A stretch of DNA of 62,854 bases, filler included, from Hyphochytrium catenoides (lineage: Eukaryota > Protista > Hyphochytriomycota), in the NCBI GenBank assembly GCA_900088475.1. It is 6 parts of 6 records of this genome, joined end to end, with 100 filler letters (N's around TTAATTAATTAA, not from the genome) between each part and the next. Parts side by side here need not be neighbours in the genome. Positions count along the whole stretch, not along the records: positions 7,565 to 20,258 come from FLMG01004493.1; 5 more parts are not named here. One strand, given 5' to 3'. A program made the translations under genes and the position numbers. Shown here piece by piece: positions 409 through 20,258 of this stretch. The notes under the pieces are model-generated. The model worked only from the letters and a program-made list of their open reading frames with translations. It had not been told where the DNA came from and did no database searches. Within the stretch, counting starts at the first letter, position 1, and each line of letters begins with the position of its first letter.

Positions 409-1317
409 ATATTACATTGAAGCAGGTAAACTAGAGATCTCTATAATCAGTACGTGGTACATTTCAAGTGTGAGAGATTCATTGAGGGCTAAGGATCTGC
501 GCCGCGTCAGATCCTTCTCTTGTGGACGAATCAGGTCGACCAAATGACCAGCCAAAGATGAGGCAGAGAAGGATCATTCCCCTCATCGATGCATCAAATG
601 GCTACCGTTAGAAAAATCTTGCAGTGGATGGCATGCAGCTTTCAAAAAGACGATCAGGGTTAGCTGGATAAGTTGGTTAGAAGTATGGACCAGAGCCTCA
701 TGAAACCTAAGGAGGAGTCATGAAAACCTTAAACCTGGTCATGGCATACAACGTAAAGGGCGATGAAGAACATAATGATGCAAGCCTTCACCTTCAGTGT
801 AAGGGCCTCAGGCTTCCTTTCAAGAGAAATATCTGTATCAATGTGGATAGAGTGGACGTCACTAGTAAGTGAGGAGAGCAAGGACGAGTTTTATTGTTAG
901 CCCTAGCAATCTGATTGAACCTTGACTCATATTGCTAAGGTGGCTCGCCCCGCTTGTCCTTAATCCTATAGCTCCGGTTTCCGGTACCTCTAGATTTGCT
1001 CCGTACAAAGTGAAGCTGAAGATGCGAAAGTCTGCTGACGATTGAGTCCGTCAGGCAAACCAAGAAGAGAAGGTGTTCCGCAGAAGCTAGCCATGCTGCC
1101 CGCCACTGTGCCTTGATGTTTGCGCTCTTCTCTTCACTAATGGGTCGTGGCCTTCCTCGTGGACCAGGTCCTATCGCCTTACATCCGTCAAGCATCGGCA
1201 GCGGTTCTTGCTGCCTGTTATTCTTTTGATAAAAAAAAGAGGGGCCTAGACAAACGTCTTCACCGATGCTAATGTACAACGCCTTTATTTGCCTCTTCAA
1301 TGGTGTCGACGCTATAG

Positions 1318-4300
1318 CTATTGGAATTCAGGTTTCAGAAACCACACGCCGCCCTTGATGCTTGCCAGCTCCCTCAGCATTTGGCGGAAGACAAGTTTGT
1401 CCTGTTGTCCAACTCTCTCGCCAAACTCTTCTATAACTTCAGCAGAGCTTAGTCCTCTTTCTCCGGCACCAATGAAGGCGCTGTGAAGAGCTTCTAGGAG
1501 TTCTATATGACGCTTCTCGGCAACTGCTCCACGATCCTGAGCATGCTCTTGGTCTTCGTTTGCCAGTAAGTTTAGACCGACCCTGCAAGGGACACAGAGC
1601 ACTTTAGCCATCTTGCTAACAGAAGCCATATACCAAAGGGTCAAACATTGAACAAGAACTCCGCTCCACTAAGAGAAGGCAATGTTTGGGGAAGACAGAG
1701 ACCTTTGGCTGGGTACCGTGCCCTGTTCTTGTCGCTGCCGTATCCGCTGCAGTAAGCTCCGGGAATCAAGAGGCTTTGTACTTCCTTCTCCGTCGTTTCC
1801 GCCAATCTCACTGGCGGACTTTCCCAGCCCGGCAGACACAGATGGAGGCCTAGAACCCGAAGCCGCAGTTGCCTGCAAAGGATGAGAATGGGCGTGGGGA
1901 TAGCAGTGAGGCAAAGGAGAGTGTAACCAGAGCTTTGACTTGGCCATCTTACCGCTGGGGAGGGCAATTTGGTTTGAAATGCGTTGCTTGTCCGACCAAA
2001 TCGTGGCTTGGGCTGCTGCTGCTGCCTAGGAGCTCCTGCTTCGCCATGACTTCCTTTGAAGACAGAGGTCAGAGTTTGCCCTTTGCACTTACTGAAGGTG
2101 TCCTTCTTGGGTTGTTCCTTTCGTCAAGGCTCTTCTTTGAACGTTTAAATGTGCCATCTTCTCTACCTACGCGCCACCTTCATACCTGTCCAAGTCGGCG
2201 CGAAAGTGGCAGTGCTCCTTCTGACGGCGAGAGTGGACCGCTTCAACGACTCTAAGGCCTTTTTCGCTATCGAGGAAGCCTCGTTCTCCATAATCTGACG
2301 CTCTCCTCCAAGGCCACCGCCCTGCAAGAGGACAGGATGTTGAGGGCCAGGAACAACTGAAGCCAATGGCCTCTCTGTAGCCGTCGCACTCATTGTGCCA
2401 CTTAATAAGCTCCTCCCCATCTCGTCTGACGCTCTGCGTCTCCTCTCTGGTAACGTTGCTTACCTTCTCAACTATGTTGTGCCTGAAAGCACCTTGCAAG
2501 TCTTTACCATTGATTAACGCTTCCAGAATGGCTTGATTATCCTTTTTCTCAGTCTCTTCAGGTTGCTCTTCGCTGCTCTCTTCCGAGCTTCTTTCGTTAG
2601 CCATTGTATATCGTTTTCTTCGCCGTTTGCCTTTGCTCTCTTTCTCTTCTCGTTCTCTCTTTTCTCTCTCTCTGTCCCGCGCAAAATCTATTCTACCAGC
2701 TGGGAAGAGGTCAGTGGTCTCGTTCAAAGACTCTTCCGTCTTATTCTTCTCCTCGTCTTCCGTATAGGTAAAAAGATCTCGAAGATCCCTCGTCTTAAAA
2801 AATCGGCGTTGTTTGGGATCCTTTGCATGAACACAATGTTAGCCAAGAATATCTGACAGATCTTTGAGACCAGAAAGAGACAGATAGATATGTACGCTGA
2901 ACAAAAGAGTGAGGCAAAGAGAGGGCAGTTCCACCTCGAACTTAGGATGGTGAAGCAACAGCGATCCATGCAGGGCAAACCTTGAGTATCTTGTTGGTAA
3001 GGAACTGCTTGTAAATCTGTCGATGGTAGATCTTCTCCTCTATGGTCCCACTTGTGATCAACCGGTATATCGTGACAGACCTTTGTTGTCCCAAACGCCA
3101 TGCCCGCTCTCGCGCTTGGCTGTCTGTTGAAGGATTCCAGTCCGGATCGTATAGTAGAACGCGGTTGGCGCCCGTGAGATTGACTCCAAGACCGCCCGCT
3201 CGAGTCGTAAGAAGGAAGAGAAAGATGGAAGGGTCGGAGTTGAATCTGAAGCGCAAGGTGAGCAGAAGGGAAGTGAGAAAAGCGGCCAACATCTGCACTA
3301 TATGATTCAACTTTCAATGAAATTGGGAATGTCTGGTGAGACTCAAAGAAAGCAATGGCGGCAATAGAGACATGCAAAGATGGCGGAAGTACGGATAGGT
3401 GCACCTGTCGATAAGTGGCTGCCGAGACTTGATGCTACTATTGCCATCAAGCCTGGCAAACTTCCACCCTCTCTCCTGTACGTACTGCTGAATAATATCT
3501 AACATCTGTCGGGTCTGTGTAAAGAAGAGAACACGATGACCCTGTTCCTTCCATAAAGGGAGGATCTGGGATTCAATTCATGGTCAAGATTGTCAATGGT
3601 TAGCACTGATGGTGGCCCCATGTCAAGAGCAAAGAATCATCTCCTTACTTGGTCGACCACCAACAATTTGCCCGCCTTTTGCCAGTATCCGTAGTCATCA
3701 GGCCTTGTGAGACTTGTGCCCTTATAGATTTTTCCATTCGGCAGCCGTTGCATGACCTGCGGTCGCGGACGGGAGGAGTCATTGAAGTGCATGAAGGACA
3801 CGGCTGAGTCCTTGGAGAAAGAGGTAGGCCCAAGCAGATGGTGGCTGTTGCCATCATTTGCCCTTATACCTTGCTCACTATTAGGGCTGATGGTTACTCT
3901 GGTTTCCTCATCTTGTTATCTTTCCAACCAACCTTGCTCTCTTGCTTCCCCATCCTTTACATCCTAAACATGACTTGCGTAACGCATTATATCACTTCTT
4001 TTGCCTGTATCTCTCACCTCATGCATCAGGTCGGGGTGGTTGCAGATCTTCCTCAAAATTGTAATGGCTCTGAAGGCGTGGACTTTCCTCTCGAGCACGT
4101 CTGTCACCTCCTTGGACGAGAGGAATGACTTGTACTCTGCCTTTTGCTCAGGAGTAAGACGACAAAATAGAACTTGCTCCGTCTTTGGAGGCAGCTTCGC
4201 TATGTGTTGAACATCAGCCTGAAGAAACATATGAAAAGAGGACGAATTAAAATTTATGACTCCGACGAGGTTTGTTGGAAGGCTGTGACTGCCTCGTTCA

Positions 4301-7002
4301 AAACGGGCCATGATCCGCTTCCGTTCGCTACTATCTATTGCAATCTTACCTTCATTCTTCTCAACAGATAAGGGCTAATAAGATCTCTTAGAATCAGGGC
4401 ACACTTATACGCCATTTGGACCTGCATGGGAGAGGCGTTCGCATACCCTCCCAGGCGGATGGGAAGGGCTAGCTCCGCCTCGAAGGTGGGCAACACCCCT
4501 AACCGACCAGGAAAGGCAAAGTCAAAGAGAGACCAAAGCTCTCGGAGGTTGTTCTGTATAGGTGAGCCCGTCAGGATCAACCGATTGACGGTCTGGAAGC
4601 GCTTGCATACCTAACAAGAGCAGGATATTTGGCAGAGAACACAGTGAGCAATGACCCGCTAGAGAATATTACATGGGAAAGACGGCCACCAGTGTGATGT
4701 CAGCGTCAGGGTTGCGTATCTTGTGGCCTTCATCCAGAATTACATAGTCCCATTTCACGTTCAGAAGTATTTCCTTGTTGATGCGCACCCCTAGTGTACA
4801 GCCATGACTCTGAGACGCTGAGCACTAGGATTGCCAAAGAAACCAGCCACAGGGATAGCCAAAAGCATGGAGCGGGAAAATGGAGGAATGTCACCAAGAG
4901 CACAACAACCGCAGAGGTCGCATCTAGAGACCCCTTTGATCTTGACTGATACTATGTCGTACCTTCATAGGTCGTGATAAGAATGCCGCCATCTCGACTG
5001 ACTTTATTCACCACCTCGGTTCTCGATAGGGAAGACCCTACAGAGCCAGAGGAATGTAGAAGTAGGACCCTGCGTAATGCAGCATATCGGGTCAATGAGG
5101 CTCCGCCTTATTTCTTCCGTCGCTGTGCTCAGCAGCACTGCTGTCTGACCCTTTTGTACGAAGGTTGCGGCCCAGGCACTACCGTGAAGTGAGATGAGTT
5201 CTATTGCTAACATCTTTCTGACCTGAATAGTGGGTACCAGCGGTGTAGCTCTCTCACCCAGTGCCCAAGCACAGATGCAGGAGCGGCTATCAGCGTCGTC
5301 TGCAGCCGATTACTGTGTGCCAGAGATGCAAGATATGCAGCCACCTGAACCGTCTTCCCTAACCCCATCTCATCGCCAACAATACCCCCAGCGCGCTGCA
5401 TGCAACAGCAACAATAGCGAGAGCTCGTCAATAAAGGGCTAATATACAGAGATAGGGAAAGAGGACGCCGAAGCACTCATCCCGGCCTATGTCGTCTGGA
5501 CTTGTTCTTACCTGGGAAAAGAGCTCCCAGAGCCACTTTATCCCAACTCGTTGATAGGCATAGAGCTTTCTATAGATAAAGTTAGGGATACGAAGGCCGC
5601 CGTCCAGGATAATTTCTTCTTGGTCAAAGTATTCATCCGGATCATGGTCTTCCAAAGCCGTCAATCCTCTCTCTTCTTGTTCCTCCTCCTCTTCTTCGTC
5701 CTCCACAACCTCCTCTTCCGCCATGTCTTGTTCCTCTCCCTCTTCTCTCTGCTGCTCTCGAAGCCGTCTTGCCCGAAGCCTGTCTATATATCGTCTCTCA
5801 AAGGTCCGGAATCTCTCTTGTCTCTCTCTATACGCATCGCTATCTCCATCATCAACGGTACTGTGGATGGGACGAGTGGGAGAGACGGAGGTGCTGCTCT
5901 CTTCCAGCTCTTCTTCTTCTACTCCTCTTTCCATTTCCTCGATCCCTCCTCGTGTTCTCTCCCTACTGGAAGTCTTCCTAAGTCTTTTGAGCTTCTTTTC
6001 CTTATTGCGAAGGTGCTTTAGCCGCTGAAGGTTGCGCTGCGACTGTCCTCCAAGCTGGGTCTGGACCTTCTCTCTCCTCTCTGTCCCCAAACCTTCTTCT
6101 TCTGAGGATGAAGACTCTGCAGACGAGGAGAAGGACGACGTCGAGCCGTCCTTTTCTTCCTCGCTGGAATCAGCCGACGTAAGCTCTTCTCGTTCGGCAG
6201 CACGCGTTTTCTGTTCCTCAAGGGCTGTAGAAAGCTGCGTTGACCGCGGGCGCGTCAGGCAGCGGTCGATGTGACGGTTGATGGTGATGTTTGAGGTGGA
6301 AGAGGGGAAAGCGTTCCCGCAGACAGGGCAACGTGACGCACCATTTTCGTCATTCTTGGGCTCATCGTTGGTCTTCTTCTCCTTCTTCTTCTTTTTCCTT
6401 CCTCTTCTCTCCTCTGCCTTTCTTTTCCTCTTCCTCTTCGTCGTCTTCCGTCTCTCTCTCTCCTCAACGATAGCTCCGTCCTCGTCCAACTGGCCCTCCG
6501 CGTTTTCCAAGTCTTTGCCTAGCTTATAGTACATCATACTCCGGCGCGGTTGTGGGGCAGCGGTCGTCTTGTCTAAGCCTTGAATGCGATCGAAGGGTGT
6601 GATCAAGCCCAATCGGATCTTCCTCTCTCTCTCTGTCTCCTCCAGAGATAAGCCTCCAATGGTAGTCTCTCCTTGTTTGTCCTCTTCTTCCCCCACCCGC
6701 TCTTCATCGTTCTCAGTGCTCTTGGCGGTTAGGAGAGCACTCTCAAGAAGAAGGAGGATGTTCTCTTTCAGCTTAAGCTTTTCTCTCTCTCTCTTCCATC
6801 TCCTCAAACCTTCCTCCCGGCTCTTTTGCCCTGGAGGTTCCCTCATTCTCTGTTCCTCTCGAGTAACACTAAGAGCATGACGGACGGCGGAGAGAGAGAA
6901 AGAGGGGAGAAGAGAGGCCACCACGGAGCCAAAGCCCAACTTGGCAGCCTCAGGAGAGCGCTTAGCCCCGCGCATTGCTTTCTGCGGAGACACAAAAGTC
7001 AC
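1318..7002 (-). CDS. ERCC6: ERCC6/CSB/Rad26-like SNF2-family helicase (transcription-coupled repair); multi-exon, 5' end uncertain or cut by the scaffold end
   Basis: Spliced exons give [47 protein letters not shown] (motif I), [12 protein letters not shown] (motif II), [63 protein letters not shown]...[29 protein letters not shown] and PTWTG..G.AGAP. The C-terminus is the CSB-type FRQMLRELA...WFLKPEF with the stop at 1318. GT-AG introns were checked, e.g. 5396-5511, 5070-5222 and 4791-4962. Confidence 0.95.
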
Positions 7003-7564: not shown

Positions 7565-8626
7565 GACACGCTGACCCATCTGGTTCTCCATAAAGAGAAT
7601 AAGCTTCAGTAAATGTTTGAAAGTCGCAATGTTGACAACATAGTTACCACCATAATAATGGGGTATCTTACCAACAAACAACAAGATGTAGCCACCCTTC
7701 CAGCCTTTTCTTGCAGAACAAAGAGGCAGATGATGGGATCTCATCGAGGAGATGATGCGAATGAAGGGTTTCAAGGACAAGCTACGCATGAACGGAATAC
7801 TGATGAACCTACCAGACTCTCTGAAGGCTGCAGTAGACGACATTCACCTTCAACGAACCGGAAACCTGACCACTGATCCGTCGGAAGAGTATCTGCTGAA
7901 CGAAGTTCACCGCCACCAAGCTCAGGAAGCTAGAACAGCCAACAAAGCAGACGATTCGGCTGTGCCCTATGTCGTTGCAAACGCACTTGATCTAACCAAA
8001 CACGTCTCCAAACAAAGAACAACCGCAACTGATCGTCTGCTCTCACTGCAAGCGCCGGGGAAGACACAAACCAGAAGCATGTTGGGAACTAGCTAAGAAT
8101 GCGCATCTTCGCCCATCATCGTCTCTCAAGCACACCCGTAAAGAGAAGAGCGTACCCGCCGACGACTCAACCGCACTATTTGCAGCTTTTATCAATTCGT
8201 TCGATCCGAACGAAAAGACCAAACTCATAAAACTCTCTCGGAGGAGCTTCCACTTATTCAACAGCGCATAAACCCGATAGGGACAAATCAATCGTAGGGG
8301 AAGTGAATTCGGCATGTACTCCTTTCTCCGAGACCCTAGGAACGTCGTGGATCTTTGATAGCGGCGCATCCGATCACATAACTGGCGATAGACAACAATT
8401 GGATACATACGAACAAATTGATTCGGTCAACCCTACAGACAGCAGACAACAGAACCGTTCAAGCAGTAGGCAGAGAAGCCGTCCGGCTAAATCTTTATGA
8501 ATCATCATCATTCTCGAGAATTTCCGACACACACCTGGCTTTACGAAGCATATTCTCTCAACTGGACAAGAACTTAAAAGGGATATCATGTAATTTTTAC
8601 CACAAGACGGTGGCGTCTACTACCTA

Positions 8627-9213
8627 GGAGGCCGTCCGGGTAATAATCAACAAAAATACCCACTTTTCTTCCAATTGTCCCACTTTTGGGCGTGGGACAT
8701 TTACCCTTATGGCTAGGCATTCCCGCCGCGCAGCGGCGAAAATTTGAGCGGAAGTAGATTATCGGCCGCGAAGCGCCGGAAAGTTCTTGGGTATATTCGA
8801 TGGATAAAGGTAAAATAATGACTAAAAAAGAACAATTTCAAGCAAATTTTGGCACTGGGAGATACTTTTCCCGTCTTTCACACAGTGACTTTTCCCGTCT
8901 TTCATACAGGGACAACCGCCAATGGAAAAGACAGGCTTAGTTCGAAGCCCACTTTTGGGGGTCATTTGCACTACAAAAACAATAGAGTGAAACCTCAAAG
9001 TGGGCTTCGAACTAAGCCTGTCTTTGAACACCGCAAGGTGTCCCTGTGTAAATGTAGGGCGGGACGCTCATACAGAAAATCCCCATACAAAGTNNNNNNN
9101 NNNNNNNNNNNNNNNNNNNNNNNNNNNNNNNNNNNNNNNNNNNNNNNNNNNNNNNNNAAGCCTAACATTGACCCATTGGAAAAGAGCCCACTTTTCTTAT
9201 GCGGACGGCCTCC
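8627..9213. mobile_element. Non-autonomous DNA transposon (MITE-like) inserted in the copia fragment
   Basis: Ends CCTAGGAGGCCGTCCG (8623-8638) and CGGACGGCCTCCTAGG (9202-9217) are perfect 16-bp inverted repeats that include a palindromic target (TA, CTAG or CCTAGG). There is no coding capacity, and an N gap lies at 9094-9157. Confidence 0.75.
8927..9025. repeat. Perfect 29-bp inverted repeat with a 41-bp loop inside the MITE
   Basis: aaagacaggcttagttcgaagcccacttt (8927-8955) is the exact reverse complement of 8997-9025. Confidence 0.95.
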
Positions 9214-12200
9214 TAGGAGCTCAATATCACTCATCATTACTACTCGTAGGAAGAGGCGACCACTACTATATTCAGCAGAAGCAGCAGTGGTATCTTAATG
9301 CGACAGAGCGCCTTCTTCCTCCCTTTCAAACCTTCAAACGGCCTCCATCAAGAGGATTCCCTATCGAACGGTAAGTGCAGATAAGCCGGTAGCAGGCGAT
9401 CGATCGAATCTTCAACACAAATAATAAATCAGGGGACAGAGGTTTCTGAAGAGCTCTCACAGCTGGAGGTGTGATGTGTAATAATACTGGTTGTTTCCGG
9501 TCGGTCTCCCATCACCGTTATATCTCTTCCCTGCGTGATGGGACGGAGGTGGAACAGTAATAATGGTGAAGAACAAAGCACAGTGAATCTGCGAAAAGAC
9601 AGCCTTTTATATCTTATTTGCTGCTGCTGGTACCGGCGGACGGTGCTTCTTATCTTTTTTTGTGTTGGTAAAACAGTAGAACTACTGGTACGGTAGGGAT
9701 GTGCCTTTTTATTAGGGTGTCTTTTTCTTCAGTTATTAGAATAGTAGACATGTTACGGTTTTCTTTTTCATCATTTCGAGACGCAGCTTTATTGTCTCGA
9801 GGCATCGAGGCTCTATCACTTGGGCTTCTTTATAAGAGACTGAGAGGAGAAAGGAATAAAGTGGTGTCTTGGGTTCCAATTCGCCTCTTTAATTTGTTTT
9901 ATTACTAGTAGTGAACCTGAGCCTCTTTGGAAGAGTAAAACGGCTTCTCCTGTCCTCAGCGTTGGGTTGGAGAAGGAACTAAAGTGGGAATTTGCAGCTT
10001 GAAGGCTCAATATTATATTCTAATCAGAGTCGTATTGCTTCCCCTTATTTTATTAGATCTGGCTAGTTGCAGTACAAGTACCTGCTTTACGTTTTTTTTT
10101 TTGTTCTGGCTTAGCTGCACTACTGTTTTACCGCATCAGAGTCTATTCTTTGTAGAAACTCTAGAGAAGATTCTGCAGACCATGGACACGTGTTACTATC
10201 CTTGGATTCGTTATTATTGTTACGCTGGGTAGAACGTTGTCTTCCCTTGTCCGAGTAAGGCTCCGTTATTACTACTACCACCCGAGAGCCTTATTATTAC
10301 TATCGGTGTACTACTACCGCCCGTGAAACGGTTGTTGAAGGTGATCATAGTCGTCGTGGGACATAGCAGACGATAAAGACTCTCTCTCCAACTATTATTG
10401 TCTCCACCTCTCCTTATTGACTTGACAGCTCGAAGGTCTTGCCTGCATCGCTCTCCTTCGGCTGACCTTGCTTTCCTTTCGTACTCCGCCGAGGTCACGG
10501 CAGGCCCACAGCGGATTCCACGTGCTGCAACGACAACGACAGTAGTCCTGCTTCTTATTAATCGAGTCATTCAGCAGCTCCTGTCCCTAGCGGGTTTCGT
10601 ATGAATAGTGAAAAATAAATGAGTCATAATGAATGTTCTTCTGTGGTTCTTCGGCAACAGGTTCTTTCACAACAACTCCATTGAGTTGCTAGTTCTTCCT
10701 CCCCCACTGCCATCTGTTTCCCCGCCCAATGATGCTCCCTTTCCTCTTTAAAAGGACAAAGCAGCTTGAGGATAACATCAACGCGAAGTTCTCTTCCTCA
10801 AGAGTTTAATTGTTTTGTGAGGATGATTACAGAGTGTGATGAAGAGTGCTTTGCTACAAGCTTACTTTGGAGCCATGAAAGACAAGTGAGAGAGAGGCGA
10901 GTGAGGGAAGAGTATAAAAGAACAGCTAGCCACCACCTTTCTCAGTCAACAAGGAACATAGGTATTGACAGCAGGTTGACGAATGTAGCTCTAGGAAGTG
11001 AACAAGGAGAGCGTCAACAACAGATCCATGTCTATTACGGAGTATAATCAGCCCCTCTATGCATCACTCATATTATCGCTCATGTGCTCAGCGGCCGTTA
11101 TTTTCAGCTGGAAGCGCCAACCAGGTATCTAGTGGCGTTCGTCCCTAGATGATGAGGGGGCAGCACATCGTTATTTGACAAAGGATATCTGCTGTTTCTG
11201 TGTGAAGGTTATTAGACGCCTGTCGCAAGAGGCTCAATGTTTTAGTTGGAACTGCTAATGATGATGAGAAAGGGCGTTTCCTCTTGGTCTTCCTATAAAA
11301 AGAAAAATTGAGAATGTACTGCTTCCACCACAAAGCATTAGAAAATTGTAGTCCATGTATGATGCACTTTGTCTGTCTATCCTCAGCAGTCTCAACACGG
11401 ACCCTGTGCTTTGCTGCCTTCTTTGAAATAACAATGGGAGCCTGACCAAATTTTGCTGAAGACCTGTCCTTTGTAGTAGGTCTCCCCCTGCTACTATCCT
11501 CTGAGAGAAGAAGTCTCCTTCTCGTTGCCTTGCTCACCAAAGGAAGACTCTCCTATAAGGCTACTGCTACTATCGAGTGAAACTACTCACTGATGACTGT
11601 TGCCGAGTGGGCGAGTGCCTGTCGCATGGATGATAACTGCCGTGGAGAGCCAGCAAATAAGTAAGGATTCTCCTTATTTACTTCTTTATTATAGACGTAT
11701 CCTTAGGCAGTGACGCAGCAGAAGCCCACAGGAGAAGAAGCTGACAAGATGCTCGCTGCGACCACCACGGGCCTCACTATAATAAATAACAGCATTCGGG
11801 AGTTGGTCAATATAACTGCATAAAGTTGCCCAGTACCAGCCAGCGTCGTCCCGGCATCCCCACGATTCCCATGAGGTACCACCACCAACAGCCTTTCAAC
11901 TGGCAGGAGGAGAGGCAGGGGCCGTACCCAGATCCTGGTGATTTGTAACCCTCGTCTTCAGCAACAGAGACCAGCAGTTAAAGGTAGTGCCTGATGGTGA
12001 TCGGCTCTCATATCTTGTCAAAGGTTACGTATGAGAAGAAGAAGGAGCTAACAAGATACATAGATGCCGCTCTACTAACTCCTTTCCTAACCGCCCTGAA
12101 CCTTGTTTATACTTATTATTACCTTTCTCTATTCTTTCCCTCTTTATGGAATGATGATAAGGCATTGCCTTCGGTTCATGGAGGCCGTGGTTGGCAAGCT

Positions 12201-13909
12201 TAAAGCAGCCAGAGCTTTCTATCATAAATAGAGAGTGCTGCAGTTAGTTGATACGAGTCGTAGTCGTTTCCTTTAACTGGCGATGAGACGGGACATCGGC
12301 AGCCTTAAGAAGTGCATCCTCCTTCGCCTTGTCTTGTGTGGAGGACCACGCAGCAGGCACCTAAGGCCCAGAGCGTTAGCTGAACTGACTGTGGAAAGTT
12401 CATCTTCTCGACAACCGAAGGATGAGGACAACGGAGAGAGGGGAAGGAGGGAAGAAAGAAGTGTAACAACCACTAAGATGACGGTGATAATGATGTGCAG
12501 TCATTCTCTCCTCCCCCACAGAGTCAAAATGATGATGGATGATGAATGAGGAGCCTAAGTCTAGCTTTTCTTCAGTGCCAGCAACCCTTGGCAGCAGATC
12601 TCTTCATCGTGATAGAATTCTGAGTGCAGATCTCCTCGAGAACAACTGCCATTCAAGTCGACAACTTATCTAACAACGTGCTACTCTCTTTAAGAGCTTT
12701 GACGACGGGGGCACCAGAAGAAAAGCGAGACGGTTGAAAAGCAGGACACATCGTTGGAAATCAACTTTCTTCTTAAGATGGCAAGGTCCAGGGGCGCAGA
12801 GAGGAGAATGGAGAATATCAGGAGGATGCAGCACCCGGCTGTGCACGGTTAAAGTCGTCGTAGGGGTGCTGTTGACGACGGCTTCATCAGCTACCTTATG
12901 ATGAAATCTACTAGTTAGCCTGTAGTTTTTGAAAAAGGAGACTGACAGTGCAGCCCTTCCACGGTTCGTGACAATCATCAAGACTATGACCACTATCCTC
13001 CTCCGTGGTGAAACAGGTGAAAAAGATAGTTACACCGTCGGTACTAGCGGTGATTAAGTTTATAAATAGAATAGTAGTACCAGTCGCTAACCCTGATCCA
13101 GGGTCGTCCTCCTCTCTCTTCTCTCGTCAGCAGCGCAGTATCAGCCTGTACGGAGAGATTGAGGGCTTAGTTCTTCAATCTTGCTTGGAAGCAGGAAGAA
13201 GATGGAGGTCGGCGGACCAGCAGCTCAAAGCGAAAGAGAAACTGCTTCAACAATGATCCTCAGTAGGAGAAGTTAGGTAATGGTGGGAGCAGGACGGGGA
13301 ACTAACGTGAGAGAAGACGAGGCGCCAAGGTGGAGAAGGAGAGTAATTCCGATACTGGCAAGGAGGAGTGATCGGGCGCCGCTTCTTCATCCAGCAGTTA
13401 ATAAACTTAGGGCGTGCGTTGGTTACAGCGGATCGATCCCCACCAACTTCTTGCTGCACCAGAGCGAGGGGGAATAATAACAACAGACGAAAGGAAAACC
13501 ACCACGACGGAGCAGAGCAGAGCAGATCTCCCTATGCTATGGGATTCTTAGTATCGATGTATGCCTCTTGCGCATAAAAAAGGCACCGCTGAGACATCAT
13601 CCATGAATGGCACCTGCAAACTTCAGTGTCTTAGCTTTTTTGTAGAGCTGCGCTATCCTAGTAGTATAGTCCGCCGATGGGATGGGTTGTTCTCAAGGTT
13701 GACGGCCGATCGACAGCGAGTGATGACTGCCATTCATCATCTTACCTCGAGGACAGAAGAGAGGAACCTGCTGCAGGACGAGGTTCTTCCTTAGGGCCGG
13801 ACCCTTGCAAGAACCTTGCAGGATCTCATAACAGCGATTCTAGCCCTTACAGCTGTCTGTCTTCTGCCTTGTGTTTTGGTGGTGCTAGCAACTTTCCTCT
13901 GAAGACGCC

Positions 13910-16900
13910 ATGATGGTGGCACCGGCCAAGTGTCAGCGGTCCCTTAATTGGACGAGGGCCGGAGGGGCATGGCTGACAGATTCCTTTGGCAGCAATGGTG
14001 GTTTTCTCCTCTCCTCCTTGGTTCTCCTATTGATGATGTCTCAGCTGGCTTCATCTCATAATGAAGACTGGACCAAGACCAGCGTTACGCAGCAGCAAAC
14101 AGCAACATCAGAAAGGTCATTGACGACAGCTTCAGATCGCAGTGGGACAGGAATAGTAGCTCTGGCAGAGCGTGATGATGGTGACCTGTCAACAAACATA
14201 ATGATTGCTGGAGGAACACTGTCCAGCAAGCTAATGTCGCGCGTGACCCGCTTTTATAACTATCTCAGTACCGTCGACGGCTCTGGCATGACACCCAGTG
14301 TGGTGAGCTATGCAGGGGTTGGCAGTAGCGTGGCTCGGGACAATTTCTTCCTTAAAAACACGGCAGATATTGCCCTTGTGGATGCTCCTCTTACCTCTTC
14401 AGATCTGGCAACCAAGTACACTGACCCCGATGTACAGATGCTTCCTGTTGCGGCCTCTGCCATCTGCCTCGTCTACAACTTGCCAGAGGCATCTAAGACG
14501 ATCACTCTCGATCGGCAAACCACGGCTCTTATCTTCCTCGGCGACATCATGTGGTGGAATGACTCAAGGATACTGGCCCTAAACCCTAACGCTGACATCC
14601 CTCAGCAGAAGATACGTGTTATCGTCCGTGCAGACAGCTCAGGCACAACTCAGGTCTTCACTCAAGCTCTCGGCAGCTTCTTGCCAGCATTTAGCACGCG
14701 TATCGGAACCAAGAGTCTTCCCGACTGGTGCGAGGGCCGCCAGGTATCGAGCGCTGACAAGAACCCTACCTACGGAGAAGTCACTTGCAACAAGGCAGCA
14801 CACTCAGAGTCCTGGACTTATTATCGCGCTAAAGGAACAGAAGGTGCAAGTGTCTCGGTGAGTTTGATACCGTATTCCATTTCCTATGGAACGTACGGCG
14901 AGGCTGCAGACATGAAGCTATCCATCAGTAATCTCGTCAACAAGGCAGGCACCACGGTGGCGCCAGGAGTAGATAGTATTGTCGGGGCCCTAATCATGGC
15001 TGAGGCGACACTAGACCACTACTGGAGAACTCCGCTACTTATCGACACGGACGCCCTTGGTGGCTGGCCCATAGTCGTCCTTCCCTACATCATCTATCAA
15101 AAGAAGACGCATATCGGAGACTGCACCACCCGTAAAGCACTCGTGCAATTCTTGCACTGGCTTCTAACAAGCAAGGACTTTGGCGCCATTGCCAGCGCTG
15201 TAGGCTTTACTTCGCTGACGGAGTTCACAAGGAATCGCATTGACAAAGAGATATTAGCTCAAGTACTTTGCGTGGATGCACCTGCCGACACCCGCCTTAC
15301 GCGGAAGACCTGCAATTCTCCGTCAAGCAACCGCTGCATAAGTCCTGGGTTCAAGGCTATGGTCATTCCTACGGTCTCTTTCCGTCATCCTGAGTACGTG
15401 TCTAGCATCGTGACGACCTACGCAGATATCATCCAGCAGGTACGCCCCTTCAGGCTGGAGCAGGATTCTACGCACATCTCAGACGAGGCCACGGCCTCTA
15501 GCCTGCTGGATCTTGCTTCACAGGGCACGATGGCCGTAGTCTTTCCCACGGAGCTGCTTGGCAAGGATGCGAACTATACGATGGTACTAGCTGCTTACGA
15601 GGACACCTCCATTGCCCCTTTCTTCGTCACGCCTGTGAAAATAGCCTTCAATTTGGGGTCAACTATCACAGAGCTGACTCTTACCAGCGAGACCTTAGCA
15701 CAGATCCTCATGGGGACGATTGAAAACTGGAACGACCTCAAGCTTGCGCCGCTGAACCCTTATATCAAGCTTCCTGACCTCGCAATCACCGTCTTAGTAG
15801 ATGATGTGAAATCGCCGGTGGCTAGAGCCCTTGCCAACTATCTCTCAGCCACGGACAAGCGCTTTGATGAGCGCTTGGGCCTTCCGCTGGCCGCCTCAAA
15901 GGCCGCGATCCGGCCGCTGGGAAGTCTCCAGGTGGTGGCGGCAGGAGTCACGGCGACGAATGGATCTATTGGCTTCATCTGGGGAACAAGTGACAAGTCC
16001 TTGTATGGGGCGAGCCTGGCTTTGAATGACAACAAGGGCGTGGTCAAAAGCGACATCGCTTCGCTTCAACAGTGCATCGACAGCTTGGGTGATAGCGCTA
16101 TTCTGACACCGTCTAAGTACGTGTCCATGTTTCAACCGATAGGTTGGGCAAGCAACTGCTGGCCGATCACCAAGTCCTTCAACGTGGGCATCAAGCGCGT
16201 GTGGGCCAGTGGTGAGAGCGTGGTAGCTGCTCGTTATGCCGATACCTTCCACTGGCTCGCTGAGGCCACAGTTGATGTTGTTGCCATGGCCCCACTTTCT
16301 TCCCGGAGCCGCGTGGCTAGATCAGTTTCGGAGATCCGGCTTGGCGCCAAATCTATTCTCAAGCCGGAGCCCTTATGCGGGCTTTCTGACATGGCCTTCA
16401 ACATCACTGAGTGCCTTCCGTCGAGAGGGGCCATGGTGGCAACGTTCTACTGGCTAAGGGGTCCAGAGGAGAAGTGGTGCTTAGACGGTCTTCCACTTCC
16501 ATCCGAAGTGCTGGTCGAGTGCGATCATATGCCACTAGACTCTCCTGTGACGAAGATGCTGCTAGCGCTCATCACGCTCTTCACAGCGATCTGCGTAGTG
16601 GTGCTCCTGCTGGCGCTTCACTTCCGCAGGACCAAGGTCATTACCTTGGGCCAAAGGACTTTCACGAACATGTTTCTCTTCGGCTCGATTCTCTTGAACC
16701 TCTCTGGGCTAACGCTCTTCGGGGAAAACACAAAGAGTTCGTGCAACCTTCGTGTCTGGCTGCTGTCCCTGAGCTTCACCATTACGTTCGCCCCTCTGCT
16801 GATGAAGCTCTACAGAATACACCGTCTCTTTAACCAGAAGCGGTTGAAAAGGATGACAATATCTAACATTGTCGTCATGATGGAGACCAGTGCCTTCATC

Positions 16901-17455
16901 GCTGTTGATCTGATTATCCTTGGCATCTGGAGCATCATCGCTTCACCAGGATCGACCTTAGTCAAGTTGTATATGCCATCACTGCTGTCGGATGTCACCT
17001 ATGAGCGCTGTGACTATGGTGATAGTACAGGTATCTACTTTGTCATCGGATGGAAGGTCGTTATCTTGGTCGTCGGGGTTCTGCTCTCCTTCAGAACCTG
17101 GAACTTGGTCGAGGACTTCTCGGAAGCAAAGCCTCTAGCCATCGCCATTTATAACACGATCCTCCTCGGCATTCTGGCGCTGGTGCTGACCAGCATGCCG
17201 TCAGCAAGCTCCTACACCTCTATCATTATCCTATCTATGTCTTGCTCCTTGATAGCGACAGTCCCGGTCATCCTCGTCATGGGCCCCAAGCTCTACTACC
17301 TCTACAAGTACAAAGAGGCGCGAAGCAGCGGAACTTCAATGGGAGTTACAGGCACCACCACATCGGCCAACGCTCGCAATGGAGAAAGCACCAAGAACGA
17401 GAAGAAATCTTCGCAACAGGTCCAGCCTGAGAAGGTCGACCCCGCCACAAAGTAG
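13910..17455 (+). CDS. Class C-type GPCR (7tm_3) with two N-terminal PstS-like phosphate-binding domains; intronless, 1181 aa
   Basis: Signal-like hydrophobic segment at aa ~32-49. PstS motifs: AGGTL, YAGVGSS, VDAPL, LVYNLP, IFLGDIMWWND...LNP, VRADSSGTTQVFT, NKAGTTVAP and WPIV. A second, degenerate PstS repeat has LAQILMGTIENWND...LNPYIKLPDLAITV and GSIGFI. A four-Cys linker leads to seven hydrophobic helices with CNLRVW, KLYRIHRLF, FSEAKPLAIAIYN and PKLY. Confidence 0.9.
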   Translation: MMVAPAKCQRSLNWTRAGGAWLTDSFGSNGGFLLSSLVLLLMMSQLASSHNEDWTKTSVTQQQTATSERSLTTASDRSGTGIVALAERDDGDLSTNIMIAGGTLSSKLMSRVTRFYNYLSTVDGSGMTPSVVSYAGVGSSVARDNFFLKNTADIALVDAPLTSSDLATKYTDPDVQMLPVAASAICLVYNLPEASKTITLDRQTTALIFLGDIMWWNDSRILALNPNADIPQQKIRVIVRADSSGTTQVFTQALGSFLPAFSTRIGTKSLPDWCEGRQVSSADKNPTYGEVTCNKAAHSESWTYYRAKGTEGASVSVSLIPYSISYGTYGEAADMKLSISNLVNKAGTTVAPGVDSIVGALIMAEATLDHYWRTPLLIDTDALGGWPIVVLPYIIYQKKTHIGDCTTRKALVQFLHWLLTSKDFGAIASAVGFTSLTEFTRNRIDKEILAQVLCVDAPADTRLTRKTCNSPSSNRCISPGFKAMVIPTVSFRHPEYVSSIVTTYADIIQQVRPFRLEQDSTHISDEATASSLLDLASQGTMAVVFPTELLGKDANYTMVLAAYEDTSIAPFFVTPVKIAFNLGSTITELTLTSETLAQILMGTIENWNDLKLAPLNPYIKLPDLAITVLVDDVKSPVARALANYLSATDKRFDERLGLPLAASKAAIRPLGSLQVVAAGVTATNGSIGFIWGTSDKSLYGASLALNDNKGVVKSDIASLQQCIDSLGDSAILTPSKYVSMFQPIGWASNCWPITKSFNVGIKRVWASGESVVAARYADTFHWLAEATVDVVAMAPLSSRSRVARSVSEIRLGAKSILKPEPLCGLSDMAFNITECLPSRGAMVATFYWLRGPEEKWCLDGLPLPSEVLVECDHMPLDSPVTKMLLALITLFTAICVVVLLLALHFRRTKVITLGQRTFTNMFLFGSILLNLSGLTLFGENTKSSCNLRVWLLSLSFTITFAPLLMKLYRIHRLFNQKRLKRMTISNIVVMMETSAFIAVDLIILGIWSIIASPGSTLVKLYMPSLLSDVTYERCDYGDSTGIYFVIGWKVVILVVGVLLSFRTWNLVEDFSEAKPLAIAIYNTILLGILALVLTSMPSASSYTSIIILSMSCSLIATVPVILVMGPKLYYLYKYKEARSSGTSMGVTGTTTSANARNGESTKNEKKSSQQVQPEKVDPATK

Positions 17456-18789
17456 CAGCTTACGCTCAGCTGTCGGTAAGGACCTGATAGTTGATAAGAA
17501 GTTCGCCTCTATAGCGAATAACCCCAAATAATCGAAGACCCAAGCTCCTCTGAACGTCCTTCTCTTTGACAGTTCTTCTCGCTAGCTTGCATACCCTAGT
17601 GTCCTTGATAGACTTTACCCTCCACGGTCATTCATACTGATGCCGACATCATCATAGAGACGCTTCTGTCCGTTTGTCTCCCATGCCTTCAACGTGCTGT
17701 CAACGATTAGCGGGCTGTTGTCCGCCAGGAGGCTTGATGCGGCGGTCGGTTTGCCTGTAGAACACCGGACTGTAAAGCCAAGAAGAGCAGATGAACTGTC
17801 AGGAAATGACCCGCCTGGCGCAATGCGGTACCATCAGAGTGCCCAAGGGTCGGGAAGTAGTAGAGCGCCTGGGCGATAGACAATCCTTCTCATGTGTCTG
17901 GGAGGGCCATTCGACGTCTCAGTGTGCCTGTGGTGCGCACAGTGACCATCTCTCCTGCCCTTGGCGTACAGCTTACCCTCGTCTCAGCCTCATAAGTAGC
18001 GGATTGGAGGGCCCTGTGCCTTTCAAGCGAGGCAGGACAGACAAGATAGACACAGAAGACAAGCACACATCCCAAACCCCATCAGCTAGCAGCGGAGATG
18101 CGTGCAGTGGATGAACAAAGAACTGAGGTCCATCTGTCCGCTGGTGACGACAGAGACTCTGCGCCATCAACATCCGGTGCAATGGCTGGTAATAGATTTA
18201 TTGAAGGCATGGAGAAACCTAGCATGTTCCACTGCGGGAGGTCACTATGGATGCCGCCAGAACCCAGGTCCGCAAGGCCAGGTTGACGGCGCCGCAGCCT
18301 AGTAAACAGCCCAGCTCATGAACATCAAAGGCTTCTCGCGTGTATCCTCACTTGCAGCGGGAGATGTGGCTCACCTCTGAGAGGAGGAAGCCATGGCAAA
18401 GGGAAGGACAGAGCGCAAAGAGCGAAAGAGAGAGAGAAAGAGAGAGAGAGAGCGGCTGACAAAGATGAAGGAAAGAGGCAATACATCGGACCCAGAGCAG
18501 TGCGTGGTCAGGAGAAAGCAGACCACAGAAGGCCGAAGACTCAGTCTCTGCTTGCTGGTCCAGCCTCCAGGTCAGGCATCGTGAGAGTCTATGAAGAGGA
18601 GAAGGAGGATTGCCAGTCAGTCCTGCTCCTTCGCCGCCGCTCGCTGGTGATGCCGTCAGGAGACGGAGCAATTTTGGAGCTGACAAGGACCAAGAGAGAC
18701 AGAGAAAGAGAGAGAGAGCTCGCAATGATGAGGAGTTTGAGGCGGGCCCAGTGATCATCGAAAGGTCATTCATACAGACCAAAACCCAA

Positions 18790-19500
18790 TTAGAGAGGGA
18801 AGGGGGAGAGACAGAGAGAGAAAGAGTCAATGACAGAGAGAAGGAAGAGAGACAGAGAGAAAGAGTGAGACAGAGGGAGAGAGAGAGAGAGAGAGTGAGA
18901 GAGAGACAGAGACAGAGGGACAGAGAGAGAGTGAGAGAGAGACAGAGAGAGAGACAGAGAGAGACAGACAGAGAGAGAGAGAGTAAGAGAGAGAGAGAGA
19001 GAGAGANNNNNNNNNNNNNNNNNNNNNNNNNNNNNNNNNNNNNNAGAGAGAGAGACAGAGAGAGAGAGAGAGACAGGAGAGAGAGAGGAAAGAGAGCACC
19101 TGGAAGTTGTTGGGGGTTGGCGGGAATATTCGATTGGAGTCCCACCCACCTTGGCCCCAAGCGATATGAGCTTTATTGGTGGTGGGTGGGTCGGCCCCTA
19201 GAGAATCAGAAGGAAGTTCACCATTGATCCTTATCAGCCCATATTAACCGCCCCCTCTCACCTAATAAAGCCTTCAGGGATTGAACTACCTGATACTTAA
19301 CCGCGGCGAGGGAGGATGAGGGTGTGGAAGCGCACGTTCAGCTAGCTCTCTAACCCTCTCTCTCTCTCTCTCGCTCTCGCTCTCTCTCTCTCCTCCCTCC
19401 CTCTCTCTTTTCTCTCTCTCCCTCTCTCTCCCTCTCTCTCCCTCTCTCTCTCTCTCTCTTTCTTTCTCTCTCTCTCTCTCCCTCTCTGTCTGCTCACACT
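18790..19500. repeat. (GA)n/(CT)n microsatellite-rich tracts
   Basis: Long GAGA/GACA runs at 18790-19095 (with an N gap at 19007-19044) and CT runs at 19345-19490. Confidence 0.9.
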
Positions 19501-20258
19501 TATGTGGTTTTCCATCCCAATTTTTTCTCTCCCTTCAATCCCTTGAGAGAGCCTTCCCTCTTCTGTCACCTTGTGTCCGTCAATCTCTCTCTCTTGTGAT
19601 TATCGCGCTTGTCTCTCCTTTGCTGCCGGCATCCACAGCGCTCCTCCCAGCAGCCCACTACTAGGTGACAATAGACACATTCAGCGGTTGCTCCTGAAGT
19701 GCCTGCAGTTGCTCTCACTTCGGTCTCTCTACTCCCAGCTCAACAGGGTGCTTCTTTCTTTCTCTCAGTCTCTCTCTCTCAGTCTCTCTCAGTCTCTCTC
19801 TCTCTCTCTTGATGCTTAGTAGAGCACCGTCTCTTTGAGGTTTCTCTTTCTTTTCACTGAGGCAAGAGAACAGAGGATAAAACCTGATCTTCGCATCACC
19901 TTGTGGCTGGAAAGAACTGCACCATCGGCTTTTCTACCTTCAATTGAAGGCGAAAGACTTGCAGCAGAGCTGGGAGAGCGAAAGGAGTAAGGAAGTCGGT
20001 CACCGTGCTGGCAGTATGTCAGGTTAGAGCATCTTTCTCTCTCTTTGTCTCTCTCTCATCCTTGCTCTCTCCCTCTCTTGGCTGCAGGCTCTCTCTTGCC
20101 TCCTCCCCCTATTGGGCTTTATTTCTCAGGCCTCCGGGCTGCTTTTCTTCCTCTCCCCTTCTGGAGCCCACCATCCTCTGGCAGCGAGACTGTGCTTATC
20201 TTAATATTGACTTGCATATCTATCTATGTGAGGCGTTAGACCTTCTCTCTCTCTCTCT

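Follow-up and report, generated by a model that had tools for sequence, protein, structure and literature searches.

The PBP_like_2 domain, the Pfam family to which the bacterial phosphate-binding protein PstS belongs, was recorded on the Glutamate-family G-protein-coupled receptor (GPCR) SPPG_06488 of Spizellomyces punctatus by Krishnan et al. (2012), together with further type II domains in Allomyces (PMC3251606). Rolfe et al. (2016) listed seven Plasmodiophora brassicae proteins combining the class C seven-transmembrane (7TM) family 7tm_3 with bacterial substrate-binding protein (SBP) or periplasmic-binding protein (PBP) domains, called four of the seven, those with PBP_like_2 + 7tm_3, phosphate transporters and believed the class to be unique to Plasmodiophora (PMC4815078). 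Type II SBP-class C GPCRs were described in anaerobic gut fungi by Seppala et al. (2016) (PMC5168858), and PBP_like_2 stands among the domain abbreviations of a survey of Amoebozoa GPCRs (PMC10445921). The full-text literature searched, with most subscription journals lying outside it, contains no functional study of any PstS-GPCR. Positions 13910-17455 of the window, the whole 62,854-nucleotide stretch of joined Hyphochytrium catenoides records analysed here (assembly GCA_900088475.1), encode a protein of 1181 amino acids (aa) in which two tandem PstS-type folds, termed D1 and D2, are followed by a stalk and a class C 7TM domain. The protein is a divergent member of this already catalogued, functionally uncharacterised PBP_like_2 + 7tm_3 kind, with a best database relative only 35-36% identical to it, and is probably a cell-surface class C GPCR of the unicellular-eukaryote type that senses external orthophosphate via the tandem PstS folds. 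A first-pass annotation of the locus had named no characterised receptor with this architecture, while allowing for uncharacterised protist homologues, which holds insofar as the searched literature describes no characterised receptor of this design, but the combination of PBP_like_2 with 7tm_3 had already been listed (PMC3251606, PMC4815078). New here are the phosphate-site status of each domain, the origin of the tandem in one ancient event, the subfamily with a stalk and the broader deployment of PstS modules among eukaryotic receptors.

The Spizellomyces and Plasmodiophora proteins share both Pfam families with the H. catenoides protein and carry them in the same order, the PstS-type domain being N-terminal and extracellular and the class C 7TM C-terminal, and metagenomic homologues have the same tandem layout. 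The published reports differ in being domain listings, without the active/degenerate tandem, the four-Cys stalk subfamily or the status of the binding site. The gut-fungal receptors likewise lack NCD3G and carry a type II binder in place of ANF_receptor on their class C 7TM, but their binding domains resemble sugar-binding SBPs and not PstS. Metazoan class C GPCRs (the metabotropic glutamate receptors mGluR, the calcium-sensing receptor CaSR, GABAB and T1R) share with the H. catenoides protein a homologous 7TM with the cysteines linking transmembrane helix (TM) 3 to extracellular loop 2 (ECL2), the Lys/Glu lock and the PKxY motif, a large ectodomain shaped as a two-lobed clamshell and descended from periplasmic-binding proteins and, as in the stalk subfamily here, a Cys-containing stalk before TM1. 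They differ in that the ectodomain here is type II (PstS) and not type I, is present in two tandem copies per chain and is joined to the membrane domain by a stalk with four Cys that is not NCD3G. Phosphate modulation of CaSR occurs via anion sites in its type I flytrap (PMC6795806), which is a different mechanism.

In bacteria PstS also serves as a sensory input, through PhoR/PhoB and in Pseudomonas aeruginosa through the chemoreceptor CtpL, which senses phosphate via PstS (PMC10443332). D1 has the same fold as the PstS of the bacterial PstSCAB system (template-modelling score, TM-score, 0.92) and the same ligand residues. In the H. catenoides protein, by contrast, two copies of the binder are covalently joined to a eukaryotic 7TM, conserved disulfide cysteines are present and a PstCAB partner is absent. 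Tandem substrate-binding domains also occur in the GlnPQ-type ATP-binding cassette (ABC) importers, where both bind substrate and feed the transporter. As in GlnPQ, a single chain carries a tandem of type II binding domains attached to a membrane part, but here the proximal domain is without a site and the membrane part is a receptor.

Domain architecture and the two anion sites

Scanned as a whole, the protein matches PBP_like_2 (PF12849) in two stretches with 102.6 bits against a cut-off of 27 and TIGR00975, the NCBIfam PstS equivalog model, with 235 bits against 205. On these profile scores and those of the single domains given below it is a PstS family member, yet one that is not certified as a PstS equivalog. 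Pfam matches to New_glue, TGase_elicitor, DUF3937 and DUF5840 were below cut-off and were discarded as noise. ANF_receptor gives no Pfam match, and the ectodomain consists of the two PBP_like_2 folds. The ANF_receptor flytrap marks animal subfamilies of 7tm_3 and not the 7tm_3 family as a whole. The replacement of the type I flytrap by a type II PstS module on an mGlu/GABAB-like class C 7TM, as put forward in the first-pass annotation, is therefore supported. The full-length AlphaFold2 model, for which 40 family sequences served as input, has a mean predicted local distance difference test (pLDDT) value of 77.5 and a predicted TM-score (pTM) of 0.60, with low-confidence stretches at aa 1-33, 49-92 and 1140-1181. 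The positions of the domains are collected in Table 1, where the signal-like segment noted earlier appears as a hydrophobic helix.

Table 1. Features of the receptor gene, with positions counted along the window
Feature	Position	Strand	Evidence
PstS-PstS'-stalk-7TM receptor gene	13910..17455	+	complete intronless open reading frame, 1181 aa plus stop
Signal-peptide-like hydrophobic helix, aa 31-49 (FLLSSLVLLLMMSQLASS), preceded by a 30-aa n-region	14000..14056	+	hydropathy peak; predicted helix H31-49
S/T/Q-rich spacer, predicted disordered, aa 50-94, carrying a 3-bp indel polymorphism	14057..14191	+	pLDDT below 50, aa 49-92
D1, PstS-type domain, membrane-distal, aa 95-460, intact phosphate site	14192..15289	+	PBP_like_2, TIGR00975, PDB, Foldseek
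Codons R240-A-D242-S-S244-G245-T246 (E. coli PstS R135, D137, S139, G140, T141)	14627..14647	+	HMMER alignment to 1ixh
D2, PstS-fold domain, membrane-proximal, aa 488-815, degenerate anion site	15371..16354	+	PBP_like_2, PDB, TIGR00975, AlphaFold2 and Foldseek
4-Cys beta stalk, aa 816-877 (C823, C835, C857, C871), CDH motif at end	16355..16540	+	alignment block; predicted beta strands
Class C (7tm_3) seven-helix domain, aa 878-1133, C945/C1034, K966, R969, E1072, P1126-K1127	16541..17308	+	Pfam, PDB, Foldseek
S/T/K-rich cytoplasmic tail, predicted disordered, aa 1134-1181	17309..17452	+	pLDDT below 50, aa 1140-1181

The fold of D1 is closely related to bacterial PstS. Scanned separately (aa 81-467), it matches PBP_like_2 with an E value of 2.8e-22, TIGR00975 with an E value of 3.6e-51, its 174 bits covering profile positions 4-310 of 315, and PstS in the PDB with an E value of 6e-24 (HMMER). 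The model of D1 superposes in Foldseek onto the phosphate-bound E. coli and Yersinia PstS structures with TM-scores of 0.91-0.92 and a root mean square deviation (rmsd) of 2.5 Å, at a sequence identity to solved PstS proteins of 22-24%. Aligned to 1ixh with HMMER, the D1 residues S139, D158, R240, D242, S244, G245 and T246 fall on S38, D56, R135, D137, S139, G140 and T141 of E. coli PstS. In the Quiocho structures these E. coli residues form the hydrogen bonds to phosphate, with D56 discriminating against sulfate. Because D1 retains the complete set of phosphate-ligating residues, orthophosphate is its most likely ligand as judged from the alignment; the solved PBP_like_2 proteins nearly all bind phosphate (PMC10443332).

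D2 is the more divergent of the two domains. Its match to PBP_like_2 (aa 468-857 scanned separately) has an E value of 2.1e-6 and 28.1 bits against a gathering threshold of 27, with an E value of 5.7e-10 to PstS in the PDB and 69 bits to TIGR00975. A separate AlphaFold2 model of D2 has a pLDDT of 84.6 and a pTM of 0.79, and the fold is complete, with Foldseek TM-scores of 0.74-0.78 to PstS and an rmsd of about 4 Å. At the positions of R135, D137, G140 and T141 it carries D631, V633, P636 and V637, so that the ligand set is lost, and the columns of the site are unconserved across the 40 relatives. Phosphate binding thus looks possible, from the residues present, for only one of the two PstS domains, D1. 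The two tandem PstS folds of the first-pass annotation are accordingly both present and complete, with the anion site of the second degenerate, and its phosphate-binding module agrees with the full ligand set of D1 but not with D2, which has lost the ligand residues. Cysteines of the disulfide type are invariant in the family in both domains (C405/C454 in D1 and C722/C750 in D2).

Between D2 and the membrane domain lies a β-module of about 50 aa, the stalk. A block with all four Cys is found in 13 of the 40 aligned relatives, and in the remaining ones D2 is linked to TM1 via a short TLPVxW segment without a stalk. NCD3G gives no Pfam match at E values up to 1, and an NCD3G-like Cys-rich domain was rejected on the lack of a match, the presence of just four Cys and the absence of the module from most relatives. 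The predicted Cys linker therefore exists, but as a small element with four Cys in about 50 aa and not as the nine-Cys NCD3G. GABAB is likewise without NCD3G.

The membrane domain matches Pfam 7tm_3 (PF00003) over aa 876-1127 with an E value of 3e-41 and 142 bits against 33.5, covering profile positions 3-251 of 251, and seven hydrophobic helices are placed between aa 879 and 1133 by hydropathy and the AlphaFold model. With PBP_like_2 and 7tm_3 both above cut-off and D1 superposing on E. coli PstS, the profile and structure comparisons proposed as checks in the first-pass annotation agree with it. The closest sequence matches of the 7TM are mGlu7 and mGlu4 (E 9e-18) and GABAB2 (E 3e-15), and Foldseek returns mGlu, GABAB, CaSR and GPR156. 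The motifs singled out earlier are present, KLYRI at aa 966-970, FSEAK at 1070-1074 and PKLY at 1126-1129, and they pair with mGlu7 in the alignment as KLYRIHRLF/KTYRIYRIF, FSEAK/FNEAK and PKLY/PKVY. The TM3-ECL2 cysteines are nearly fixed in the family (C945 invariant, C1034 in 39 of 40 members), as is the TM3 Lys/TM6 Glu lock, with K966 a Lys and E1072 a Glu in 37 of 40 each. Conservation in the family is at least 90% for K966, R969, F974, W1007 and E1072, and about 75% for the PKxY motif at the end of TM7 (P1126 in 30 of 40, K1127 in 31 of 40).

Homologues and the history of the tandem

HMMER, run exhaustively against the 1.84 billion representatives of a 15-billion-protein collection, gave 9232 matches at E values up to 1e-3, 83 of them at E values up to 1e-30. 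The 1181-aa protein and close relatives of it are absent from the searched collection, in which the best match is 36% identical. Rescanning the top 150 matches with three parts of the query identified at least 85 diverged representatives in which one or more PstS-like domains are followed by a 7TM, so that the architecture proposed from the H. catenoides sequence recurs widely, in a family with many metagenomic members. The tandem is the commonest layout among these rescanned matches, and some proteins have three PstS folds. ESM Atlas clusters containing 7tm_3 and PBP_like_2 carry the labels Discosea, Chlorophyta and Chytridiomycota, and AlphaFold DB cluster matches include more proteins with PBP and family 3 GPCR domains. 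A word-indexed search with D1 had as its sole match a 1477-aa PBP_like_2 + 7tm_3 homologue from another organism (P0159), located at 902-5335 on the contig ENA ERZ25067524 (53979 bp). This contig is gene-dense and eukaryotic, with genes for a GH95-like protein, alcohol dehydrogenase, glutathione S-transferase (GST) and ferric reductase adjoining, and its genome style is unlike that of the window.

A maximum-likelihood tree was calculated from 36 D1 domains, 36 D2 domains and nine single-domain relatives, with four three-PBP proteins excluded for uncertain alignment register. The D2 domains all fall on one side of a branch (Shimodaira-Hasegawa-like approximate likelihood ratio test, SH-aLRT, 98) as a single clade, and independent origins of the two PstS domains were rejected on this ground. 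Several subclades are common to the D1 and D2 subtrees, and the end branches of D2 are about twice as long. Since there is a single D2 clade and the two subtrees share subclades, the tandem goes back to one duplication that preceded the family's radiation, and both domains have since been passed on as a unit with D2 evolving faster.

The R-x-D-x-S-G-T signature is kept in about a third of the family members. No GPCR fusion carries it more than once, and where present it lies in an N-terminal (membrane-distal) PstS fold. The 1181-aa protein sits in the site-retaining clade beside single-domain PstS-like proteins. In a well-supported clade that holds 21 of the 36 receptors in the tree the phosphate ligands of D1 are replaced (for example R135 by Q, Y or L and G140 by A), and the PstS fold and the disulfide cysteines are retained. 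These substitutions suggest that the 21-receptor clade has shifted to another ligand.

PstS-type domains are also joined to other outputs. A 1664-aa protein (P0058) has two of them, both with R-x-D-x-SGT, followed by a protein kinase and a guanylate cyclase, which is the layout of a receptor guanylyl cyclase with PstS replacing ANF_receptor. This kinase/cyclase architecture mirrors one use of ANF_receptor in animals. Two proteins of 1.9-2.4 kaa (thousand amino acids), P0002 from the ichthyosporean Chromosphaera perkinsii (EukProt) and P0019, contain four to five tandem PstS-type domains, then Ephrin_rec_like or DUF7630 repeats and then a weak TRP-channel match that is below the Pfam gathering threshold in both (27.7 and 19.3 bits against 28.5). 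An AlphaFold DB entry named 'TKL protein kinase' also aligns to D1. The fusions to kinase/guanylate cyclase argue for a sensor role, and together with the below-threshold TRP-like matches they fit such a role better than one in transport.

Gene integrity and genomic setting

The gene is the sole long open reading frame (ORF) of the 12.7-kb piece that occupies positions 7565-20258 of the window (FLMG01004493.1). The frame is uninterrupted over its 1181 codons on the + strand, as the first-pass annotation had it, with an in-frame stop eight codons 5' of the first ATG. Logan contigs from three DNA runs (X1, X2 and X3) of two samples of the source organism tile the whole ORF and bridge each domain boundary (X1 record 3 covering 14687-17924, X2 record 9 covering 13703-14835 and X3 record 18 covering 15306-16374), although these runs possibly overlap the data from which the window itself was assembled, which makes the tiling a matter of consistency and less than fully independent proof. 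The depth of the contigs across the ORF is flat compared with the flanks. Their divergence from the window in single-nucleotide polymorphisms (SNPs) is about 0.5-1% overall.

Of the 19 SNPs listed within the ORF 13 are synonymous and six non-synonymous, against a chance expectation of 24% synonymous, and the sole indel, carried by contigs of X1 and X2, adds 3 bp (GT+G) behind 14060/14061 without shifting the frame, just past the signal-like helix. The synonymous excess together with the in-frame indel indicates that the reading frame is under purifying selection. From the tiling contigs and the mostly synonymous variants it follows that the gene is under selection and is no assembly chimera; it is a real, intact eukaryotic gene joining two PstS domains to a class C 7TM.

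The surroundings of the gene are sparse. No second convincing ORF is present in the approximately 9 kb surrounding it, where the flanking ORFs appear non-coding, and the more than 6 kb upstream (7565-13909) contain no ORF above 150 aa, a low gene density around 13910-17455 for a gene of protist type. This upstream region is interrupted once by N's, near 9090-9160, and a 24-bp tandem repeat lies at 8864-8913. No ABC transporter components (PstCAB) were seen among the ORFs of the piece, and an Rfam scan of it found no family. About 0.5 kb 3' of the stop codon there is a deletion-type polymorphism of 41 bp at 17977-18019, with a single T in place of the deleted segment; X1 and X2 each show it in a single contig and also contain the undeleted form. 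Between 18400 and 20100 lie dense GA/CT microsatellites broken by N gaps, such as the (GA)n of 18806-19006 and the (CT)n of 19356-19491, which give rise to strong GC and AT skew at 18565-19064 and to spurious SLSL/RERE ORFs on both strands.

Proposed phosphate sensing and competing explanations

We infer the following scheme for the receptor. D1 would close on inorganic orthophosphate by means of hydrogen-bond donors of the bacterial PstS type and the same Asp, D2 and the disulfide-stabilised four-Cys stalk would form a rigid relay carrying the closure of D1 to the seven-helix domain, and the 7TM, with its class C microswitch residues kept, would signal to a heterotrimeric G protein, probably within a receptor dimer. 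The biological role may be the sensing of external phosphate for a nutrient response or for chemotaxis. Several points weigh against this scheme. The inter-domain geometry of the full model is uncertain, as its pTM indicates; the TIGR00975 cut-off is passed only by summing D1 and D2, D1 alone remaining below 205 bits; T103-L104 (motif GGTL) was matched to T10-F11 of E. coli PstS by motif, outside the printed alignment; and with the canonical site lost in two thirds of its members the family overall is not dedicated to phosphate.

The failure of D1 alone to reach the equivalog cut-off and its low identity to solved PstS proteins would also fit another oxyanion or a phosphorylated ligand (arsenate, phosphite, pyrophosphate or an organophosphate), with architecture and signalling unchanged, and arsenate or tungstate is also bound by some PBP_like_2 proteins (PMC10443332). 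Such a ligand is nevertheless unlikely, as all alignable side-chain ligands of E. coli PstS are kept, including D158 (D56) and the R240-D242 pair. D56 is the residue by which protonated phosphate is favoured over sulfate. On the output side, many protist 7TM proteins are without a known transducer and class C receptors are dimers in which one subunit may be uncoupled, so that the protein could be a phosphate sensor or an adhesion-type 7TM without heterotrimeric G-protein signalling that acts via different partners, forms a constitutive co-receptor subunit or, like GABAB1, is a partner that does not signal. This is rendered improbable by the conservation over 40 diverged members of the Lys(TM3)/Glu(TM6) lock, R969, F974 and PKxY, positions that are common to the G-protein-coupled mGlu and GABAB2.

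A function in uptake, in which the PstS domain hands phosphate to the seven-helix domain acting as a nutrient transporter, is suggested by the naming of the Plasmodiophora homologues as 'phosphate transporters' and their expression during infection (PMC4815078), and by bacterial PstS being itself a transporter component. The membrane domain is, however, unambiguously a class C GPCR 7TM with receptor microswitch residues, and the same PstS modules are joined to kinase/cyclase outputs, which makes transport very unlikely. We know of no member of the class C 7TM fold that transports solutes, which also counts against it. An assembly chimera or a dead, unexpressed ORF would account for the lack of the protein in the 15-billion-protein collection, whose closest representative has 36% identity to it, and for the lack of a second convincing ORF in the surrounding 9 kb. 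It is an exceedingly improbable explanation, because contigs of three DNA runs from two samples span every domain junction, the frame is open for 3.5 kb with the synonymous excess and in-frame indel marking constraint, and at least 85 diverged homologues have their domains in the identical order.

Sensing of external orthophosphate by a class C receptor, the explanation preferred here, bears on how eukaryotic microbes detect external phosphate, which is an open question; a 2024 review of diatoms describes it as unknown whether the sensor is at the plasma membrane or is an internal one of the SPX type (PMC11448323). The H. catenoides gene and the relatives that retain the site, about a third of the family, are tangible candidates for such a sensor, with a single predicted ligand apiece and the usual GPCR read-out. 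The pairing of an active with a degenerate clamshell in tandem is furthermore a natural experiment on how clamshell closure leads to 7TM activation in class C receptors. The value of the finding is tempered by the earlier publication of the architecture as a domain listing and by the function being one that we infer. A broader and more tentative possibility is that PstS is a general extracellular phosphate-sensing module of receptors in eukaryotes, parallel to ANF_receptor and used in class C GPCRs, in receptor kinase/guanylate cyclases and possibly in TRP-like proteins, and that the ancient pair of ligand-binding and ligand-dead clamshells in the GPCR branch is a pseudo-heterodimer in cis, dividing labour within a single chain as GABAB1 and GABAB2 do between two. 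If this is true, the plasma-membrane phosphate sensors long sought in protists, algae and zoosporic fungi would be found in the PstS receptors.

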